A stretch of 63,235 nt of DNA, filler included, from Platydemus manokwari (Eukaryota), in NCBI GenBank assembly GCA_037951405.1. It is 6 parts of 6 records of this genome, joined end to end, with 100 filler letters (N's around TTAATTAATTAA, not from the genome) between each part and the next. Parts side by side here need not be neighbours in the genome. Positions count along the whole stretch, not along the records: positions 1 to 13,968 come from JBBMOY011561411.1; 5 more parts are not named here. The stretch is one strand, 5' to 3'. Positions within the stretch are counted from its first letter, which is position 1, and the number at the start of each line of letters is the position of its first letter. Shown here one piece after another: positions 1 through 13,968 of the stretch. A model generated the notes under the pieces. That model saw nothing but the letters and a program-made list of their open reading frames with translations, was not told the origin of the DNA and searched no databases. The translations under genes were made by a program, and so were the position numbers.

Positions 1-75
1 CTCACGTGGCACGAGAGGCACTGCTTTGACATTGTGGCTTCCAGGCACCAGGTGTGTTCGTGTAGGCCATTCCTT
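1..75 (-). mobile_element. DNA transposase fragment (Chapaev3/CMC-like, the family with the downstream LPPLHIKLG motif), running off the window start
   Basis: Minus strand reads KEWPTRTHLVPGSHNVKAVPLVPRE, matching the recalled KxWPxRxxLxPGxxNVxxxPLV segment of this family. GC-rich relative to its flanks. An in-frame stop lies immediately upstream. The superfamily name is from memory. Confidence 0.5.
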
Positions 76-441
76 CTAATTAGATAAATTTTAATTAAAG
101 GAATCTGAAAAATATGATTCTATATTCACAAAGTGTTTTTAAAACAAGCAAAAATACGCCAACGAACTAAAATTTAACAATATCGAAAGATAATTTTCAT
201 TTGCTTCGAATTTAAATGATTAAAGTGTTATAAAATATTCACTACTTATCCAATACCAATTATAAATAAAATAAGAATTTATTTTCCTTAACCATTATAA
301 AATAATAATAATATCGATTCATTTCAAATATTGAAAAATTTGAAATTCAAAATAACAGATATCTATAAAAACAACTGAAACTGAACCAATAACCATCAAC
401 ATAAACATTATATTACGATTTTTTACAATTACCCAAAGCGA

Positions 442-3400
442 TTATTGAACTTTCTTTGATTTCGAAACTTGTAACTTATCTTGTAAACTTAACCATTCAC
501 TTTTACCAGTCCAATAGTATAAATAAAAATGTAAATATGAAATCACAAGACCTATTCCACAAAATAATGACGTCATCATCAATGGGAGAAATTCTAGTCT
601 GGGCAAAAATATTGGAAGAATGAAATCAGTGAGTATCCATAACGGAAGAACCATTGCCAAGTGTAATTTAAGTAATGGAGAGATAGTATTAAGCACTTTT
701 TCACCACACATATAGCTAACTTGGATATAATGGGTACACGTGCAAGCCAAAAACAATGCAATTTTCAAGCCATATTCTAAATATAAAAGAATTAAATTGA
801 ATGCAATATTCCAGTAAAATTAATATTCGATAAGATATAATAAATAATCGATTTGTTTTAATCATTTTTAGACAATAATCTAAGATTGTTAATTATCTAA
901 ATGTTTTTATAAATATATAAGCGTGTTATTTGCTGCAGAAAAAATGATATTAACTCAGTTTTCTTAAAAAAATCAATAAAATAAGGTATTCCTGGATCGA
1001 TTTAAGACAAAACACTCCAGCTACTTATATAATTTATTTATGTGACTTACTTATCTTAGATAATTCAAGTTTTGTAAATAAATATTATTAAAAACTAATC
1101 ACAAGCAATGAAACATTCGACAAGTGGTTTTATCAACAGTTATAATTAATCGATATTTTCAGCTGTTTATCACAAATCAATCTCTCTCAATTTACTCAAA
1201 TCAAATTTAACATCAATTTAAAGTCAAAACACGCTGAAGTAAAAGTCTCCAAAATAATTTTATGAGATTGAATGGAATTACGAGTAATCTTTGGTAACTG
1301 ATATTCGGATCACATCCATAATCGAAATAATGGTTATTTCATAAATGTATAAATAAGGTGAGATATTTTTGTTTAGAATTTTGAGAATGAAATTTTATTT
1401 GCTCCAAAATATAATTAAGAGTAAACTCTGAATAAAAATATATACTAAAAAACTAGTAAACCAATTATAGTTCTCATCTTTCATATTTTAAGAGCTTTAT
1501 CAAGACATTATTCGAGATCAAACCAAATCACAGTGTTATGATATATTTTACAGGATCGAATCATAAATTAATTTTTATTCAAACAAAAACAATATAAAGC
1601 GATCAAATTACCTGGTTTAGTGGGAATCAAAGGTAACAAAGAAAAGTGACCTATTGTTGTCACATAAAATCCTAATCCCAGACATTTGGGATCCAAAATC
1701 TCCAGGATTCTAAAAAATGTAAACAATTCATGATTAATTTATAAAATTACACAATACGATGAAATATTGTTTAAAATAGATTAGTATCTATTCTTTCAAA
1801 ATGAGAACGTAAAACAGCATAGATCAGTCGCGATAGTTTTTCAAATGTCAGATATTTAGAAATATTTTTTTATTGTTTAAATATTACTTTCTATTTTTTA
1901 CACCAGTGTTCTTCAAAAAGCGGGGCGCGAGAAATTTCAAAGTTCTAGTAAAGCATTCATAAGAAAATATTCTGACTTATATTAAGACAGAATATCGATC
2001 GAATTTTAAAGCTCTGGAATTAGTACTGAGACCAGCCAACACCGAAATAGAGCTAAGACTTGATGTTTTATGCCAGAATATGCAAAATCGCTGTTATTAT
2101 TAAATACATTAATTTTTTGATGTTATTATTTTTATTTCAGTCTCTAGAAGTCGTGAAAAAATTTGGACTCGTAAAGTGGGTCGCAATACAATACGTGTGA
2201 AGATCACTTATTTACACGATATTGTTTAAATTTATACATTGTTGAAAAAATTTTTTATTGAAGCTATTTGTAATATTTGTTTGAAAATTATTTTTTCTTT
2301 AGTATTGAGATAAAAATATCTTGTTTGGTACGCTGCACTAGATTTTATCAAGAAATAACAAGAATCTTTTACATATCCATGAAATGTAGGACCACTTCAA
2401 TGTTAAATAGCGACCAATGGTCAATGGTTACTTGTTTTCCAATAAATTAAACGGACGGATTCATGGATGATTTGCTTAAAATTATGATCACAGAACTAAA
2501 AATCAGTCGGTTTATCAAATAACTATTAACGAATTATAACAACTTTTATTTATAACAACTCTATAAACATAACTAATTGCTCGATAAAAGATAAATTACT
2601 ATTCAAATAATAAACTAAAAGTTATATATTCATTATTAACCAATGTTTATGCTTATGCCCTTGACAATAAGTTCAGTAACGATATGTAAACCTAAATTCG
2701 GTTAATGATTTCTAGTTTATAATCTTTAATACTGACATATTCATTATCAAGCTGGAATCAAACATGTATGTCTCCAAGCTTTGTTATCATTTATAAATAG
2801 ACATTAAAGGCAAAGAACAAAATTTTTCAATAAAATTATTAATATTTATCAATGTAATTTTATAAATAAATCCAAAAAGCAAAATTATGATTAAAATTGA
2901 AAAATGCGTTACATTTTATTAGATTATTTGATTCAATAAATAATTTCTCTCTACAAAACCAGTCATCTATCATGAGGGATTTTTGCAATTATCTCTTCCG
3001 TATTGTGTTGTACACACATGACGAGGGAAGGAAACTGTGGTACAACTCGAGATAAATTTTGTCATCAATAATCAATTAAGTATAGATAGAGACAGAGATT
3101 GTCAATATTTTCTAGAGGTCAAGGCTTAAAACCACCGAAATAATTTTAATATAATTTTATATAAATTCTTGGAATATTTTGTTAAATACTATGGCATTAA
3201 ATTATTAATGAGATTTTCGTGAAAATGAAATTTGATCACAAACTCCTCAATGATTGGATGGATTATGTGAGTTGAGATCATAAATCATGAACACTGATAA
3301 ATCGGTTTTATAATCCTGTCTACCCAATGAAATTTCAACTCACAACATCTCTACTGTAACTTGACACGTGCTGCTTGCCATGAATTGCTGTTGTAATTGC

Positions 3401-6400
3401 ATTTTAATTCCATATCACCATGGCACTCACAAAATCAATCAGTAATATTTCCCTTTCTCATAAAATAGTAATTATCCAATATACTCACTTGAATGGTAAT
3501 GTTACCATAAGAATAGCTTTCTCGTGAACATGCCAGCCGAATATAAATGCTGACCATCCACAGATAATCAGTAATTTGAAAAAATCACTAATCGAATTGG
3601 CAAAACGACATTTGATAAGAGCAGGCTAAAAATAGAAAAATTATATATAATCTTGAATTGTTGATTGGATGCAAAATATTGATCGGTATCCAATGATGAT
3701 TTAGGTGAAAATTTTAGTTGCTAATGGTTACCAAAACTAGACCTCATTTATAAATTGTTAATAGCATTAAGAAATCGATTAGATATTGTAAATATTTTAT
3801 TTTTTTACAAATATTAAATAAAAACAAGCAAAAATAAAGAGTAAAAGAATAAATATAATCTAAAGAGAATAATATCTCATAAACATCAATAATGACACAA
3901 TTCACTGAATTAAGAATCAAATCATAACATGTCAGAAATTATTTTAGAGTTAATTATATATAAATTATCATTATAATGCATAATATATCACTTGATCTTA
4001 CCACAATACTTGCAATTGTTCGCATTAATGTTGTTAACGGTTTAATGCTTGGAAATATTAAATGATTATATTTCTCTACAAGACCTTTGGTCATATCGTT
4101 TGACAAGCTAGATACACCAGTCATTACACCAACTGTTAATTGATGATAAAATATGCTCTCTAATAAACATTCATACCCCATTTGGAGAATGCCATATCCA
4201 GTGAATTATAAATTGCCCACATATTCGGTGCCCAATATGCGTGAGTTAATCCTCTCTCATCAAATGGAAATAATCTGCTCATCAATTGGCCGAATTGATT
4301 CTAAAAATTTTAAAATAATACAATCAACCAATCAGCGTTTACCAACAAGTTAAAGTGGAATATCTTAGTATTACTTGAGTGTGTGTATTTTTATCTTAGA
4401 TAATAATAATGGGAACAAATATATTTTAAATTATTATTAAATCTTAGCATAGATTGATATAAAGATATTAATTTTAAAATTCTATATTTAAAAAAATGAT
4501 TAACATGAACCAAACAAATAAGAAAACCTACATATGATAATAATAATGACAATGGGAACTTCTATAATGAAGTATTTATCATGTAAGCTATATTTTTATT
4601 GAATAAATAAATTTTTACCCAATATGGATTAAATTAAAAATAAAAATTTTAAAAAATAAAATGATATTTTAGATTAAACTTGATGGATTTCTCATGCTAT
4701 TTAATACAATGTTTGATATCTAAATGTATCAAATTATTTTATTAACGTATATCAATTAATATGCTTTTAAAAGGCGCTTGATTGATTGAGAGATAATATG
4801 AGCCGATGGATGAAAGAAGTTCACATGATGAAATATTGATTTCAGAAATTATATTATCATCATTATTTTTATTGATATTATCATTTTGATAATAATTATT
4901 ATTTATTATTATTGTCAAATGATCATTTTCATCATCGCTTTTGTCTATTTTTTGTTATTATTATTTGATAATAATAACATATGATTATGACAATTATGAT
5001 AATAATATTAATAAATATTATTTATATCTTAAAATAATTGACTTCTTACATTTGATAATAATTTTATGATTTACTTTCAATCTAACATATGAATGACATC
5101 ACATTGTATGTAATCATTATATATTGAATATCAATGCAAAAGTTATACAGGTTCTCTATTTAATTCATAAAAATAAGATAGAACTTCTATTATATAAAAA
5201 TAATACACAAAATTTGTCTAGCCGAAGAGGACAAGTGGAAAACCCAAAACAGTTTTTGACTGAATATCAACCAGTGGAAAAGAAAATGTAGATTCGAGGG
5301 TAATTAATCGATAGTGATTTAGATAGGATGATAATTTTTAAAGCCAATAAACTCAATGAGAGAATGTTACAAAAATAATGTTACCAAAGCAAATCAAGAC
5401 AAGGAAGGCAAATAATTCTATCTAAAAGTAGGGTGAAGAGTCGGAAAATATGATTACTTTAGCGTTCTCTGGGAAAGTGTAAATCATGGAAGAGCAGATC
5501 ATTGAAAGTTCTAGAGAAAAAGAAGTTGAGGACAACATAAAAGTTTCGAAGAGATTCAAATTCAAAACAGATTTCGATAAATATAGATTTAAAGAAAAAT
5601 AGATGATGTGAATAAAAATGGTCTATTTAATGACCCAACTAATAACTACAAGATAAAAAGAAAGTAACACACCAACAGATATAAATTTCAGGAAGATGTA
5701 AATGTTGTTTGTAATTCCCTGATAAACCAGTTTCACTCATCAGTATCATACAAGACCTCAAATCAATCATTTAATGATTCATTCATTGACATATAATGGA
5801 ACACAATCCTATTTCATCCATCTAGATTCTCACTTGTCACGTGCGCCTAGATACATGTTGTCATGCCATTTTTGGTTTCCATATCATCGTATGCTTCACA
5901 TAGACAATGATAAGATAATTATTAATAATCATTTAACCAAACCACAATCTCCAACCCATGTCACCAATAACAGATAATTTTTTAATTATAAATAACTAAT
6001 TAATTAATTTTAATAAAATTTTATTATATTTAATAATTATTCATTTCAGATCATAATTAATAATTATTAATTAATATTAATTTGATTAATTAATGTAATA
6101 ATATATTAATAATTATTAATTAATATCAATTTGATTAATTGAGCTAATAATATATTAATATTAATAATTATTAATTAACATTAATTTGATTAATTAATGT
6201 AATAATATATTAATAATAATTATTATTGATTATCATATGAAATGAAACAAATATCATTACCATAGCTATAAATGGTCCAAATGAAACAGCAAAAACACCG
6301 ATGACAATTGAAGCGAGTTGACAAAACCGTTTGTAATCAAAATGATATTTGACTGATATAAAATATTAATATTAATATAATTAAATGAAATATTACTCGT

Positions 6401-7428
6401 TTTATTGACATTGTCAACAGTGGACACAAAACAGAAATGGAAGAATAAAAATGCCCCATAAGCGGGAGCATAATAAATAAAAATATGCTTTAGGTTCAAC
6501 AAAACAGCAAACCAAAATGCAGCCCACAAATGACGATTCTGAATAAATAAATCATGTTAAATGATGGATATCTTTATAGATAATGCTATTATTTTCAGAA
6601 TATTTTTCAAACATCATAAAGGTTTTAAATAAATAATTAATTTAAAATTCCATTACATTGTAATTTCAATAAAAAAATTAATTAAAATTTAATAAAAAAA
6701 AATAATAAAATCAAAAGATTACCTTCATTAAATTGGAAATACTCAAAAATAATACACCGAAAAGCATACCGTTGTACTGGAAATGAATATCTAAATCAAT
6801 TAAATACCAAAATAAAAATCGACATCATAGTAAAACAGAAAATACGATCTATTAAAAGCAATCCAAATGATCCCAATAATGTCAATGTCGTCAAGATACC
6901 AAATAACGAATCGTGTAATAATTTTGAAATCGGCTTACAAAACATAATTCTTGAAAACAGTTATTTCTAGATATAAAATCGTTTCTAGTTAAATTACTTA
7001 AATATGGACAGAATGTAAACAGCATCAAATATAATAACGGATAACTTTTGAAAAAGTTTCGTACTGTATGACATATAGTTAAGGTTTTCAACAATTGTCA
7101 TATTTTTATCGAACTCTTTGCCAAATTGTGACAACCCGTATTCGAACCATGCGAACAAAGGAGGATAATCTAATGTCCATTTGGACGTATTCTAATAATG
7201 GGTAAATAAAATGTTTAAAATTATTCAGAAATAAGTACGTCACAATACCAAAATTTTATGGGTAAACTATGAGTTATAGCTAACCAATTTCGGTGAACTT
7301 CAAAATCAGTCGAAACACTAGAAATACATTAGAAACAGATAAATTTCACAACATGCTTACTATGAATGAAAAAATGACAATTTGATACAAGTAATAAAAA
7401 CTGTAACTATGAAAAATAATTTAATCAT
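442..7428 (-). CDS. ALG8: Dolichyl pyrophosphate Glc1Man9GlcNAc2 alpha-1,3-glucosyltransferase (ALG8), 12 exons, 523 aa
   Basis: Exons (all GT-AG, phases compatible): 7361-7428, 7239-7317, 6998-7191, 6846-6949, 6723-6790, 6397-6538, 6261-6352, 4177-4300, 4002-4132, 3489-3625, 1612-1709, 442-776; total 1572 nt, open. Motifs [84 protein letters not shown]. Confidence 0.97.
1904..2209 (+). mobile_element. Non-autonomous hAT (Buster/Charlie-type) element in ALG8 intron 10
   Basis: Ends CAGTGTTCTTCA...TGAAGATCACTT. 8-bp TSD ttttacac (1896-1903) / atttacac (2210-2217), 7 of 8 matching. Same family as 32883-33178 in the opposite orientation. Confidence 0.8.
6055..6225. repeat. AT-rich minisatellite, about 3 copies of a roughly 50-bp unit, in an ALG8 intron
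   Basis: Unit approximately taattattaattaatattaatttgattaattaatgtaataatatattaa, repeated in tandem. Confidence 0.7.
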
Positions 7429-8170
7429 TGTAACTTAATTAAACGATGTAAAACTATTAATTGAAATATTTTAGTAGAAGTATTAATTTCATTTAGAAAT
7501 TTAAACAAAATGCTTCATAGGAATTTCTTAATATTTACTAATTACTTTAATATTATTTTAAATTAATAACATCAAATTTAATATTATTATAGCAACAAGA
7601 ATCATAATTATCAATTTGATAGTTGTTTGCACTATTTTATATTTTTCTTGTTTACTTTTATAATATTATTTTCAAATAAGAAGTTGTGTAAGATTCTTCA
7701 TGAGATCTTTGTAACTTTAACATTCTGTATCAAGAATAAACATTAGTAAAATATTGTAATAGCAGCGGTGTTATTGGTTTTTCACAAAATTGTTATTTAA
7801 GTTTAAAATTAATTCCAAAAAATCTGACTTATTTTCTTTAAAAAGTTTGGTCTTAAAGGAAATGAACAATAAGACTAACAATGAATGAGTAATTAAAATT
7901 AATTATTTACCTATAAGTCATTCTATCAAGATTGGCAACATTTATAAAATATATGGTCAAACCAATTCAGTTGTTTTAATAAATATCTAACAAACAGTAA
8001 ATATTTATTCTAGCAAATAATTTACGTAAACACACTAATCAATGTGTATTGGTAAGGCATTATCTGATGGCTTACAAATAACACTCAATAATAAAAAAGA
8101 ATTACAAAAAATTGACAAATATGTTAATATTTATTTAAAATGAAAGACAATATCATCGTTGTAATCATAA

Positions 8171-10240
8171 TTATACAGTATTGACAAATTTTCCCGCTGC
8201 AAATAATTTCAATTCCGAAAATAATAGAAAAACATCCAAATGATAAAGTGAACCAATTTCGACGGCTAATAATTGCTCAATTTTGATTTGTGCTGTCACA
8301 GTACAGCCTGCTTTATTAATCAATCTAGAATTATGATAAATAAATCAATAATATTTCCCCACACAAAAACTCTTTAATCAATTTACCGGGGAGATTTTTT
8401 CACGATTTTTTGTTTATTTTCATAATATTCCACCGTTAATATTTTCATTAATTGACAGAAACAGCTACGACATTTGAACCATAGCAACATCTTAATAATC
8501 AATAAATCAAATCCAATACAAATCATCAACCAATCAAATCAAACATTCATTCCATTCATTATTGGAATATTGATATCACAATTGAATATTCGTATCTCCA
8601 CTTTAAAATGATCGCTAATCGTCAGAGGATAATCAGGATGACAAATGAAGCTTCCTTTCTTGATTTTATCTTCGGTATCGATTTCTGAGAGAGTTAATTC
8701 CACGAAATGACCCGCGAACGCAAACGATTTCGTTTTTAATTCATCTTTTTCAAAATCATAATTAATCAAATTTTGTGCTTTAATAGAATTTACTTCCTTC
8801 CTGAACTTTCATTGATTTTACTGTGCATTCAACAATTTCCGGTACAATCAACCCTTTACTGGTTCGATAATTGACTCCGGAAGAAATTCCACCTCTAATT
8901 ACGTAACCCGATATTACAGGAAGAGCCGATTCAATGGGTTTATGAATATCGACAATTTCCATCAATAATGGCTTATCGAATTCCATTGATAGTGGTTTCA
9001 TTGGTAGGTTATTGATTCGATCAATAATTGCTTTCAATTCACATGCTTGAATATCCAACACATTGCCAATGATTGAATGATTTAAATTTGATTTGAAAAA
9101 TTTTTTCCAAATCGATTTGATTTTTAAGAAAGGTTTTTCAACATTTTCATGAAATTGGTGCGTATTTACGAACAGAATTTCCAAATTATCAATGGCAAAT
9201 ATTTTCATGATGTAGAATACATTGTAAAGGTAATCATAATTTTTAAATGACAACGTAGTTGAGCACCAATCAGTGGTCAGATTGATCACCAACAGGATGT
9301 GGTGAGATTTGATTAGACTCTTCATCATTTCTTCATAATAACATAAATTTCCGGGCGAATCAATCAAATTGACCGATCTACCGTTAACATCGATGCAATA
9401 AAACGAAGTGGAAATTGTTTCTTTGTAAAATCGTTCATCTTTCGATGTATCCATAAGCCAAGCAGATTTGTATTCTATCGAGTTCATTTTCGTAGCTTCC
9501 CATTCCGTTTTTTTAATAAAAGAATTATCCAAAACATCCAAATATAAAAGAATATTTCCGATTATCGTACTTTTACCAGATTTTGGAAAACCCACAAAAG
9601 TTAAGTTGACATCATTATTTGAATATGAACCATGTGTTTTATGAGCTTTGATTATTGAATCAAATTTATGTTTGGAATTTGACGATTCTTTTGCACTTAT
9701 TTTGGATTTCTTAGTTCTTTTAAGAAGATAACTTGGGACGATATCTTTCCCTAATTGGTACTTATTTGGTACAAGTTTTTTAAATTCTGGTTTCTCGGCA
9801 GACTCAATTAACTTATTTATATCCAAAGGTTTACGGTTCTTAGTATACTTAATATATTTAATTAAATTTATTACATTCGAAGGTATAACATATCTCGATA
9901 AAATATTAAAATCTTTTATGTTTTCCGATGGGTTTTCAAAGATAAATGAAATTTTTTTCTTTTGAGGCATTAGTTCCAGTTCAGAATTCTTGAGTAATAT
10001 ATTCGAAGATTTGATTGTTATCTGTTGACTTTTAATATACAAGTTTTTCGCGAATTCTTTCTGCTTTTCTTTAACATTATTGACAGTTGTCTTAAAACAA
10101 TTATCTGTACTATATTTATTCAGAGATTTTTCAAGAATATTATCAAGAGATAATTCTGTAAATTTTGAATCTATATTATTACATTTTGATTGAGTCTGAT
10201 TATCTTCGGATTTTTTGAAAAACGACTGTTTTTTGAACAT
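8171..10240 (-). CDS. HBS1/eRF3/eEF1A-family translational GTPase-like protein with degenerate G motifs (Ski7-like candidate), 4 exons, 634 aa
   Basis: Exons 8794-10240, 8545-8744, 8387-8490, 8171-8324 (GT-AG introns of 49, 54 and 62 nt; 1905 nt, open). First ATG at 10240 (the ORF-track start at 10285 is GTG). G1 GFPKSGKST, AWLMD..KDER, G3 DSPGN; domain II FAFAGHFVELTL and KKGSFIC; domain III KKSPRLI and terminal FAAGKF. AATAAA on the minus strand at 8130-8135. Confidence 0.9.
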
Positions 10241-10525
10241 AAAAATATATTTTATTTCAAATAGTATTATTTTAAATATGCGCACTTATTTAAATATTTT
10301 TCAAACAAAATCATTTAAGTGGCTAAAAATTTATTAAAACACAAATCTGTAACTTAAATTTCTTTAAATATGCGTCCCATTTATCATCATTATAATCCCA
10401 CACATATATGCAGGAAAATTACTTTGTCAAGTGTATTTTATATTATTGAATATTTGGTAACATATTTATCATGGTGTAAATTTAAAATTTTTATTTCTCA
10501 AACAGATAAAAAATGTTTGCTTTAA

Positions 10526-12685
10526 CCACTTTATGCGAAGGTTTCTCTGTGAAATGAGGTTCAAAAAGCAGGTTTTTTGTTTTTATTTATAATATTGATA
10601 AAGTAGAAATCATAATATAAACTTAAAAAAACATTAAAAAATTGAAAAACGTTAATTTAAAAAAAAATTCAACTTTGTGTGATAAATCTTAAAGCAAGGT
10701 GTCAAACATAAGCCCACATTGCAGTCAGAACAATAATACCGATTTTCACACCGAATTTTCTTCCCCTTCTCATTTTGTTTACTGCAGTCGATGGCACATC
10801 TTTTTGTTGAAGCCAATTTTTTCGGTACTTGGAATTGGTTCCAAGAAGTGACGTTCTGTCAATCTTAATGGATTTCTCTTGCTTGGACGACCATCTTTTG
10901 ACGAATACTGTAAATCATGATACATTTCTACATATTCACTGATTAGTAGTTAGCGAAACTCCAAGTTACTCGTAGAGCCCACTTGTTTTGTGTACCAAAA
11001 ATGCGTTCCACAAGACTTGTTCCAATTAATGGAAAAATGTTTTTTTTATAAAACATAATAATTTGAGAGGTATTGATCTACTCTATCAACACCTCCCATG
11101 CTGAAATTGTAGTCCTTTGCTCTTTCTAATATTTTTCTTTAAATATTTTATGGAGTCGGTGCCATGTATGGTAGAGAGAAAGAACATATCCTTCTTATCC
11201 TTCCATCTTATCACAATTACTTCTCTTTTTCGATATGCTGACACAAACCCCGGCCTTACTTTTTTTGGAACGGTTAAATTTTTAGGATTTACTTTTCTAT
11301 TAGATTTTCTGGTTCTATAGATATCGGTTGTATGTATTACTAGAAGATCTGTTCATTCAACGGGTGAATAAAAATTATCAATTGTAAGGCAATAACTTTT
11401 GTTTATTAATGGTTTCATGAGAGTCATTACAACTTGCGTTGGCATTGGTAAATTGACACATTGTTGTTCCCCGATAATTTTTTCTTTCCCTATATATAAG
11501 TGATGATCATTTATATCCCAATTTGAATTCGCACAAAAAATAACATTTTATCCTAAATCAGGCTTTTTATTGGTATATATTGTACCCAAACTAATCTACC
11601 TTTGTACAACATAAGACTTTCATCAATAGTGATGTGCTGTGTATATGCCTCTTGGAATTTCCTATTTAGGTGAAAATATGCAGGCCAAATTTTGTTGAGT
11701 TTTGGTTGTGGATGTAAAATTTAAGTATTTCTTATGAAAATAAATTTTGATGTGACATCAACTTAGCATAAAACGGTGTGAAAACTGACAGTCTTCTAGT
11801 CCAGTACAATTTTTCTTCCGGTTTTTGATCAATACTCATAGCCATGGTAACGACAAAAAATCCTCATTTCTGAAATGCTGGTAGACCATGTATTCTCAAC
11901 ATTGGAGGAAGAAGTTGATGGTCTTTCTTTTATAGTTTGTACATAGTACAAATTTGTTTGGTCTACAATATTTTGTACTAATTCGTCATTGAAAATGCAG
12001 TTGAAAAATTGACTCGGTTTTGTAAACGATGAAATTTCCTCATTTATCTGTGAATTTGCAGTAAAGTCAAAAGATGTTGATGCTGCGGGTATATCGTTTT
12101 CAATATTTATTTCCGTCCATTCGTCGGATATATTGTTTTGCGATTGATTTGAATCTGTTTCATTGTCGGAACTAGAACTCAGAGCTGAACATGTTAAATC
12201 GGTTTCAGAATGTTCAATATGGAACTCCTCTCCGCTATCGCTATCGTTTTCCATTCTGCAAAAAATTGAAAAAAATCAGATAAAATAAATGACAATTGTT
12301 GAATATAGAAATTGATGTATAAATATAAAGTAAAAATTACTTACTTAACGATCAAAAACAATAAGTAAAAAATATTTGCAAAATAATACACTTAAAATAT
12401 GCAACTGAAAAACACTACATAAAACCATGGAAGAAAAGAAAAAGCACGTCTGAAAGTGTTTGTTTATGTTTGTTTTGTTATACGCATGCCACTGGAGCAC
12501 GCATTAAATTCGAACGAGCATACAATAAATAAACACTAAGCTCTATGAAATACAAACGGGTGATAAGGTATTGCTCCAGATAAAAATATAAACATAATAT
12601 TTATAAGTGGCGAAAGGTACTCGGAATAGCGCAAATTTGAACACATTTGATGCACGAGAGGGTCTCGTTTGAGATGCTTAAGTGG
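10526..12685 (-). mobile_element. Full-length but degenerate piggyBac (PGBD4-like) transposon
   Basis: TTAA at 10522-10525 and 12686-12689 flank CCACTT...AAGTGG ends. The transposase starts MENDSDSGEEF at 12254 and is frameshifted. Motifs ITIDESLMLYKGR, CLTIDNFYS, YNFSMGGVDRVDQ and a C-terminal cysteine-rich domain (RYYCSDCNVGLCLTPCFKIYH) ending near 10665. Confidence 0.9.
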
Positions 12686-13157
12686 TTAAAGTTGTACATA
12701 GTTAAAAAGCCTGCACCAGACAGTGTCAGATTTTGGAAATGCTTATATTTTCAGAAAAAAATTAACAAGCACTGTAAATGATAAGATTTATATCATAAAA
12801 CTATAATTCAACAAACTTCCACCCCCTGCTGTGTAATTGCGACGTAATTGTTTTTTATACAACTTGTTTTCGTGTCATATAAGTACTCTAATTCTGTTCT
12901 AACTGTGCCTTTAATAATTATCACAACAGCCTTAAATAATTATCTGCCATTACTCACTTAATGAGTTACATTATGTTTTTTCATCTCTGAATTTATTATT
13001 TCAGACAGTAATTTCTTTGTAATTAAATTTGATATAGAAGATAGAAATTCTCGATGATTATATTTATTTTCTGATTTTATAATTTAAATTGGCCTGGTTA
13101 TTTGTCATATTATGACTATTTTATTGACAGCCATAATTTATTAGGTACGAAAAGACA

Positions 13158-13267
13158 AGTAGATGTGAAAGTCGGTCTATGATAGCATAACCCACAAATA
13201 CTCACTTGCTCGCGCTTGCTCACATTTGAGGGTTACATTGCCACTGAGATTGATTTTCACATCTACT
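13158..13267. repeat. About 110-bp imperfect palindromic (hairpin) element
   Basis: Arms agtagatgtgaaa...taacccacaaat and atttgagggtta...tttcacatctact around a central ctcacttgctcgcgcttgctcac. Confidence 0.7.
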
Positions 13268-13968
13268 ATTCATTGATAATATTTTTAGAAATAGTATCAA
13301 TTTTTCTAAATAAATAAAATCTTTTCAATATTATGATAAAACCTTATGAAAAATCAAATTCTTAAAAATGAATGAGTATAAGTGTCGAATTTGCGATACA
13401 ACTTTTAAAATCATTCGAGCTTCAAAAGCCAAACTAGCAAAATATATTGCTCACATTAATAATAATAATAATTATTATTATTATTATAGAAAATAATTAT
13501 TTAAATTTATGCTCATCAAATTCACTAGAAAATTATCTTCAATTTGATATATGATTGATTGAAATCGGCTCATTAAATTCAAAATTATAAAATATACACA
13601 ATTCAGGCTCGAAACCCTTCGACAATCTATTTAAATAGTTGCTGGAAATAATTAATTTTGAAAAATTACACGAAACACAATCACAATAACAATATTTGAA
13701 AACATATAATCATGTTATCTATGAAATTTTAAATTATCGAGAGAAGAGTAAGTGTTTTAAAAATTTCCCACTAGTCGTATTTGTATATATAAAGAACATT
13801 ATTATCATCATTATATCATTATTTTTACAATATTCATTTGTCCATTTTGTTTGTCGCCAAGATGCTTTCCATCGTTAGGGTGCTTTTCATTATAAAAATA
13901 AAAATACTAGAACTAAAATTAAAAAATAATTCTGTGATAACAGTAAAACAATAATAATAATGATAATA

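Follow-up and report, generated by a model that had tools for sequence, protein, structure and literature searches.

A minus-strand gene within a 63,235-nucleotide stretch of Platydemus manokwari DNA (NCBI GenBank assembly GCA_037951405.1; six parts joined end to end, of which the first, positions 1 to 13,968, comes from record JBBMOY011561411.1 and holds the gene; the whole stretch is called the window below) is predicted to encode a 634-residue protein with the three-domain body of a translational GTPase and a set of eroded catalytic motifs. This protein is very probably derived from HBS1 and hydrolysis-dead, judging by its domain scores, a diagnostic insertion, and the residues it has lost. 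Our favoured reading of the gene as a whole, to which we give about an even chance, is that of a lineage-specific, very fast-evolving HBS1 derivative of the flatworm type that would act as a non-catalytic adaptor. An initial annotation of the same DNA had described an intact HBS1-family gene resembling a Ski7-type pseudo-GTPase, possibly a stand-alone duplicate.

Gene model and GTPase motifs

The gene (positions 10240-8171), which was rebuilt by hand and by script, comprises four exons whose joined coding sequence of 1905 nt has no internal stop and a single terminal TAA at 8173-8171. The product has an N-terminal region of 205 residues, behind which lie domains G, II and III as in eEF1A-type translational GTPases (Table 1). 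All three predicted introns run from GT to AG, and each splice leads into a frame with HBS1 domain II or III homology that continues to the C-terminus; left unspliced, intron 1 would lead to a stop after four codons, and its removal returns the frame with HBS1 domain II homology. In an alignment with two partial relatives (described below), the three proteins begin MFKKQ, MMFRNE and MFRKQ, at one and the same residue, which supports the start Met.

The window has a GC content of 27%, and the other two frames across the gene span contain 42 and 75 stops. Among single-base changes in the G-II-III codons, 5.6% create a stop, and ~12 stops are expected in this body at 0.5 neutral substitutions per codon; none is observed, the 429 codons and three introns being free of lesions. 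The body thus seems to have been selected for an open frame, until recently at least, and not for GTPase chemistry, and we hold with good confidence that selection has kept the frame open in this species. The sole public sequencing run holding DNA of the gene yields one contig that spans 7908-10592 without differences, at a depth of 12.6 that is equal over the gene and its 3' flank (single-copy level); this run is probably the source of the assembly itself, and the match shows consistency rather than independent support. As read from the DNA, then, the gene is real, intact and unusual, with a splice model that is predicted, and in this respect the initial annotation (intact frame and splice sites, domains G, II and III) is borne out.

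The G domain matches Pfam GTP_EFTU at 1.2e-13, and a sequence search of the PDB returned aEF1A, eRF3, eEF1A and HBS1, all in the range of roughly 1e-10 to 1e-8. An AlphaFold2 (AF2) model of the domain reaches predicted local distance difference test (pLDDT) values of 80-92 over residues 210-320 and lower values past that point. Together with beta-barrel domains II and III, it is collinear with members of the eEF1A/eRF3/HBS1 superfamily.

Within this fold, the features that define a working HBS1 (canonical G1-G5, the catalytic His, and GRFxLR in domain III) are missing. The G1 motif retains its GxxxxGK[ST] core, with the His, Val and Asp of GHVDxGKST gone; the position of this Asp coordinates a monovalent cation in active translational GTPases (PMC4509514). 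Switch I has kept its Thr, and G3 its DxxG, with Asn in place of the catalytic His, while G4, which directly follows a strand at residues 355-358 in the AF2 model, has lost both the Lys and the guanine-specifying Asp of NKxD. The QAD motif, the TREH motif and the G5 Ser are gone as well, and in domain III the canonical LGRFxLR reads LDVFLLF, without the Gly and both Arg of a GRFTLRD-type motif that has its role on the Pelota/eRF1-binding side (PMC2613156). The positions that the initial annotation gave for G1, G3 and G4 are exact, and the erosion it described extends further than it listed, to the P-loop His, Val and Asp, QAD, TREH, the G5 Ser and GRFxLR.

To place these losses on a scale, we defined near-invariant columns as those at least 90% identical among 84 canonical HBS1, eRF3 and aEF1A sequences; the protein keeps 23 of the 44 such columns, versus 36-44 in the canonical sequences, structural Gly and Pro columns being retained. 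GHVDxGKST, DxPGH and NKxD are present in nearly all of the best 150 database matches, and the eroded state is therefore exceptional. What remains of the nucleotide site is GKST of the P-loop, DxxG and the Thr of switch I, and a phosphate-binding pocket may consequently persist; the replacement of NKxD by NTHQ implies that guanine specificity is lost, along with the G5 Ser. By its motifs the protein is predicted to be unable to work as a ribosome-activated GTPase. The dead G domain proposed initially is thus upheld at the level of sequence, the His being replaced and the GRFTLRD-type motif lost as in Ski7.

Family assignment and evolutionary rate

HMMER, run exhaustively over 1.84 billion representative proteins, gave 790 matches, among which no close full-length relative was found; neodermatan HBS1-like proteins ranked highest among the full-length matches, the best being those of Cichlidogyrus, Schistosoma, Hymenolepis and Schistocephalus. 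When the complete 634-residue model was scored domain by domain against every fetched protein, domains II and III together gave 73-77 bits to flatworm HBS1, 43-66 bits to other animal HBS1, 34-53 bits to other HBS1-like proteins and 22.7 bits to the single matching aEF1A, and none of 11 eRF3 sequences matched at all. The G domain alone scored about 50-60 bits to every group, being too eroded to tell the groups apart. Exons 2-4 are collinear with HBS1 domains II and III through to the C-terminus.

The second line of evidence is a five-residue insertion in domain II, S[SA]GVNxxTS[KR], which among 180 fetched proteins occurs only in neodermatan HBS1 and is also present here (SSGVNYRTSK); around it, 19 of 33 residues match Schistosoma without a gap, by eye. 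Three more blocks are shared with the neodermatan proteins of Schistosoma (XP_051070171), Cichlidogyrus (KAL3313869) and Hymenolepis (CDS28822): FAFAG, CT(A/V), which lies in domain III, and KPxDxxxL(V/I), which precedes the G domain. Overall identity is ~20-25%, and those proteins, in contrast, have canonical G1-G5, GRFxLR and an MSRHRN N-terminus. The initial placement in the HBS1 family accordingly stands. Protein-atlas matches agree with the flatworm type.

The site of intron 1 (8745-8793) coincides with a variable insertion of neodermatan HBS1, ~20-110 residues long, that follows VKSIRSL; this may mean that introns were retained in some of the annotated insertions, or that the site is prone to gaining introns.

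A branch 6-10 times too long keeps phylogenetic trees from placing the protein: the terminal branch measures 2.8-5.1 substitutions per site, where the median is 0.47, and neodermatan HBS1 branches are 6-10 times shorter. The free topology was unstable, the protein grouping first with the long-branch protein P0001 and then with mite HBS1, and since trees were unstable the family assignment rests on the domain scores and the insertion. A constraint to flatworm HBS1 nevertheless gave the best likelihood found, 11.8 log-likelihood units (lnL) above the quick free tree. Exons of the neighbouring ALG8-type gene have ordinary Pfam matches (44.5 bits over 32 residues in one case), which argues that the acceleration is specific to the HBS1-like gene.

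Neither partner of the free trees was retained. P0001, which had also been the one weak match in a word-indexed protein search with exon 1, was drawn to the query by long-branch attraction and then dropped. It is a divergent 661-residue eEF1A-family protein in which motifs are altered (GNKGSGKST, DLPGD) and NKMD is kept, and its cluster has 14 members on AT-rich, intronless ENA/JGI metagenome contigs of ~2.2 kb. The second tree, together with the domain III string KK.PRLI.K, had pointed to mites as the source, but the domain II insertion, the higher flatworm scores and the better likelihood overruled this; the attraction probably reflects shared AT-rich composition.

The N-terminal module and its two relatives

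Among about 15 billion proteins only two relatives were found, both on Logan contigs, from runs SRR33002330 and SRR27492285, and both matching only residues 1-190. The first (P0002, from contig L001 of a species here called A) has an open frame of 193 residues with 41% identity, and the second (P0039, from contig L002 of species B) an open frame of 186 residues with 33-36% identity; their DNA has a GC content of 31% and 24%, respectively. The N-terminal module is the sole part of the gene that is open in both.

Directly behind each intact N-terminal frame lies a decayed remnant of the G domain. In species A, HBS1-like homology carries on directly past the end of the open frame and is interrupted by at least three frame changes and several stops in ~65 codons; the P-loop is ruined (GSLKSADNT), with the blocks IKAH and FIKKTEW still recognizable. 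A 14- or 27-nt intron bridging the stops of species A was considered and rejected, as it would be too short and the three frame changes would persist. In species B, a stretch equal to residues 194-227, P-loop included, is missing, and a collinear remnant of residues 228-321 follows in one frame with five stops and a 13-residue deletion at switch I. The remnant alignments in both relatives beat 300 of 300 shuffles. On this comparison the GTPase body is taken to have been lost independently or stepwise within one gene family, and since the body is broken and the N-terminal frame kept in both relatives, the N-terminal module would be the conserved part and GTPase chemistry dispensable.

The module itself is modelled by AF2 at low confidence and is probably flexible, with short helices at residues 32-42, 57-65, 120-134, 141-149 and 188-202 that largely coincide with the conserved blocks. 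Its best-conserved block (KLVPNKYQLGKDIVPSYL) has P158, Y161, G164, DIVP and YL invariant. A profile search with the module recovered the same two relatives and no more.

Two short segments resemble the peptide motifs of human HBS1L-V3, in which RxxxFxxxL and PFDFxxxSPDDIV (Patch-4) lie ~46 residues apart (PMC5389692, PMC6143672). In the candidate K59xxxF63xxxL67, F63 and L67 are invariant in all three sequences, species A reading RQENFANNL. The Patch-4 look-alike ISFIFENPSENI sits 36 residues beyond it, F99 being its sole residue invariant in the relatives. Such candidates are leads only, as they are short, other mappings are possible, and their statistics are not significant.

The G-II-III body might already be functionless in P. 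manokwari as well, a translated passenger or very young pseudogene tail, as yet free of stops, behind the ~190 N-terminal residues that alone would matter. The loss of the body and retention of the N-terminus in both relatives fit such a state, as do the erosion of catalytic, base-binding and partner-binding motifs alike, the low modelling confidence over the later half of the G domain, and the lack of an RNA run for the gene among public data. We nonetheless judge it unlikely, as neutrality would predict 12-48 stops, yet no lesion interrupts the 429 codons or the three short introns, whose GT..AG ends and phases are all correct, whereas relative A accumulated its frame changes and stops within ~65 codons; moreover, the body still has its structural Gly and Pro columns, GKST in the P-loop and DxxG.

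Table 1. Features of the HBS1-like gene and of the remnants in its relatives (window positions unless a contig is named).
Feature	Position	Strand	Residues	Remarks
Start ATG	10240-10238	-		Met aligned with start Met of both relatives
Exon 1	8794..10240	-	1-482 + 1 nt	1447 nt; N-terminal module, G domain, start of domain II; open reading frame (ORF) list and hand model
N-terminal module	9626..10240	-	1-205	no known domain
KQKEFAKNL	10040..10066	-	59-67	candidate [KR]xxxFxxxL, lead only; alignment
ISFIFENPSENIK	9914..9952	-	97-109	weak resemblance to Patch-4 (PFDFxxxSPDDIV), lead only
KLVPNKYQLGKDIVPSYL	9725..9778	-	155-172	best-conserved block of the N-terminal module
Degenerate G domain	8996..9625	-	206-415	Pfam GTP_EFTU
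G1, GFPKSGKST	9566-9592	-	217-225	canonical GHVDxGKST
Switch I, YKETI	9413..9427	-		canonical RGxTI; Thr retained
G3, DSPGN	9347-9361	-	294-298	DxxG retained; catalytic His replaced by Asn
G4, NTHQ	9155-9166	-	359-362	replaces NKxD
ISSGVNYRTSK	8855..8887	-	452-462	domain II insertion signature; regular-expression survey, alignment
Intron 1	8745..8793	-		49 nt, GTAAAT..AAAAAG, phase 1
Exon 2	8545..8744	-		remainder of domain II, beginning of domain III
Intron 2	8491..8544	-		54 nt, GTTTGA..TTAAG, phase 0
Exon 3	8387..8490	-		middle of domain III
Intron 3	8325..8386	-		62 nt, GTAAAT..TTCTAG, phase 2
Exon 4	8171..8324	-		end of domain III, stop TAA
LDVFLLF	8219..8239	-	613-619	domain III; canonical LGRFxLR (Pelota/eRF1-side motif)
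Decayed G-domain remnant, species A	L001 631-820			directly behind intact N-terminal ORF
Decayed G-domain remnant, species B	L002 1161-1410			directly behind intact N-terminal ORF

Ski7-like adaptors and the status of the gene

The closest known arrangement is that of Saccharomyces cerevisiae Ski7, in which the HBS1-derived three-domain body is likewise kept. Ski7 has Ser in place of the catalytic His (PMC4509514), where the present protein has Asn; it has lost the GRFTLRD-type motif and sits on a long branch that is hard to place (PMC2613156), both of which hold here; and its N-terminus differs from that of Hbs1 (PMC4509514, PMC2613156), as the N-terminus of the present protein differs from canonical HBS1. 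With its His replaced, GRFxLR lost, body kept, a fast rate and a novel N-terminus, the protein can reasonably be called Ski7-like by architecture. Ski7, however, is fungal and coexists with Hbs1 in yeast, whereas such coexistence is a prediction for the present gene, and an origin here would be independent, in a flatworm-type animal.

Except in a few yeasts, alternative splicing of HBS1 is the usual source of SKI7 function (PMC6143672). In the HBS1L-V3/SKI7 splice forms of vertebrates, plants and many fungi, it is the region of peptide motifs that works, GTPase activity not being needed, and the N-terminal-only frames of the two relatives resemble the GTPase-less HBS1L-V3 of vertebrates. Those forms arise from one HBS1 gene and share HBS1_N, in contrast to the separate locus without HBS1_N described here, and the counterparts of their RxxxFxxxL and Patch-4 motifs in our protein are weak and ambiguous. 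Within flatworms, an HBS1-like variant 3 of Schistosoma haematobium (P0004) carries a 200-residue cassette (residues 130-329) with the motifs KTPSFFGLL and FVFDIPEP, and this cassette is the difference between schistosome HBS1 isoforms of 871 and 671 residues (P0161). Flatworm HBS1 would thus seem to make a SKI7-type isoform with the GTPase body kept, as plants do.

The following mechanism is the one we consider most consistent with these features. The gene would still yield a protein of full length with all three domains, similar to a translational GTPase but unable to perform ribosome-activated hydrolysis. Its selected activity would lie in the ~190-residue N-terminal module, with short conserved helices and peptide blocks amid variable sequence, and the G-II-III body would be at most a non-catalytic scaffold, its open frame held by selection in this species; in the two related ones the body has decayed to a pseudogene tail that follows a still intact N-terminal frame. 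As to its specific role, the likeliest would be that of an adaptor of the Ski7/HBS1L-V3 kind, without enzymatic activity, that serves mRNA surveillance coupled to translation, and the genome most likely has a canonical HBS1 at another locus as well. That the product truly bridges SKI complex and exosome is doubtful, and we give this narrower proposal only a modest chance.

Several observations weigh against such an adaptor, or against its origin as a duplicate of flatworm HBS1. The N-terminus of Ski7 binds Ski3/Ski8 and the exosome; the N-terminus here has no match in Pfam or the PDB and no significant similarity to Ski7 or HBS1L-V3, and comparisons with the Schistosoma SKI7-type cassette (BLASTP, E 2.3) and with flatworm HBS1 N-termini (hhalign, E 0.11; top block KPLDINKLI vs KPIDRHSLV) were not significant. 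In humans, SKI-complex binding is a property of both isoforms (PMC5389692), and the N-terminal region common to them is absent here: HBS1_N (MSRHRN..., with an acidic stretch and a UBA-like fold) has no Pfam match at E up to 10, and the protein begins MFKKQ, versus M[SA]RHR in every fetched canonical animal HBS1. In Ski7, G4 and G5 are preserved and GTP is bound tightly (PMC4509514), whereas both motifs are lost in the present protein. If flatworm HBS1 makes a cassette isoform, a separate Ski7-like gene is not obviously needed. A constraint to eRF3 raised the likelihood by 7.1 lnL, to about 4.8 lnL below the flatworm placement, and the approximately unbiased (AU) test rejected neither placement. 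The only public run with DNA of the gene is DNA-like, and no RNA run was found; the two relatives are short contigs; and the status as a duplicate is inferred. The Ski7-type assignment of the initial annotation therefore stands as far as the replaced His, the lost GRFxLR, the kept body and the fast rate are concerned, and falls short in the N-terminus, which lacks significant Ski7 similarity, and in the lost guanine-specificity motif; the translational GTPase phylogeny it proposed gives flatworm HBS1 the best likelihood found and leaves an eRF3 placement unrejected.

Loss of the Pelota-side motif, gene-specific acceleration and the tolerance of body loss in the relatives favour a duplicate or a gene freed from its ancestral role, and every sampled neodermatan keeps a slow, canonical HBS1, which we also count toward duplication. 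A comparison with the HBS1 locus of Cichlidogyrus, the one canonical flatworm locus retrieved, revealed no shared intron position (near residues 47, 181, 338 and 390 there; 482, 549 and 583 here) and no shared neighbour (CDC50 there), which fits a separate locus without being proof of one. From these sequence comparisons, a paralogue existing beside canonical HBS1 is fairly likely. In the literature searched, we found no report of a stand-alone Ski7-like HBS1 duplicate in animals.

The gene could instead be the sole HBS1 of a lineage with a degenerating Pelota-HBS1 system, an orthologue that works without hydrolysis or is near loss. Only one HBS1-type locus is known here, all of its similarity is to flatworm-type HBS1, and HBS1 is missing from some eukaryotes, such as some Apicomplexa (PMC2613156). 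Such a history appears improbable given the slow, canonical HBS1 of every sampled neodermatan (Schistosoma, Cichlidogyrus, Hymenolepis, Schistocephalus), the absence of the Pelota/eRF1-side GRFxLR, and the normal conservation of a neighbouring housekeeping gene, and a broken G domain behind a kept N-terminal frame in two relatives is ill-suited to a rescue GTPase. An ancestor other than HBS1, namely eRF3 or eEF1A, for which PDB matches to aEF1A, eRF3 and eEF1A as good as those to HBS1, undiscriminating G-domain scores and the AU result might speak, is highly improbable in view of the domain II and III scores (none to eRF3, 22.7 bits to one aEF1A, 73-77 bits to flatworm HBS1), the neodermatan HBS1-specific insertion and the higher likelihood of the flatworm-HBS1 constraint.

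The surroundings of the gene comprise, downstream on the same strand, an ALG6/ALG8-family glycosyltransferase gene (442-7158, minus strand), whose exons spread over ~6.7 kb with long introns and match Pfam Alg6_Alg8 with normal conservation (profile positions 50-103, 164-234, 238-268, 274-316 and 396-480). About 400 nt upstream, also on the minus strand, is a decayed piggyBac-type transposase (10652-12254), in which an N-terminal ORF (weak match to DDE_Tnp_1_7) gives way to fragments in other frames and finally to a Cys-rich tail. Positions 10532-10700 form a high-copy repeat, at which contig word depth rises from ~12.6 to ~578 and partial contigs and loose ends are numerous. The sequence there is probably either a terminal portion of the transposon or a dispersed repeat of another kind.

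Under the favoured reading of a non-catalytic HBS1 derivative, a flatworm-type lineage might have independently split a stand-alone Ski7-like adaptor off HBS1, with the three species as successive stages: one with a full-length protein and a dead G domain, the arrangement of yeast Ski7, and two with a decayed body, which would have reached the arrangement of HBS1L-V3 through gene decay instead of splicing. We regard this scenario as speculative and rather unlikely in its entirety. The function of the GTPase-like body of Ski7 is itself still an open question, for which two scenarios have been discussed (PMC4509514). If the favoured reading is true, a separate HBS1-derived animal gene, in which the catalytic machinery is gone and the body has been kept in one species and discarded in two relatives, would amount to a natural experiment on which parts of such an adaptor are needed; if the gene is instead the sole HBS1, P. 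manokwari would be a rare animal that manages without a catalytic HBS1.

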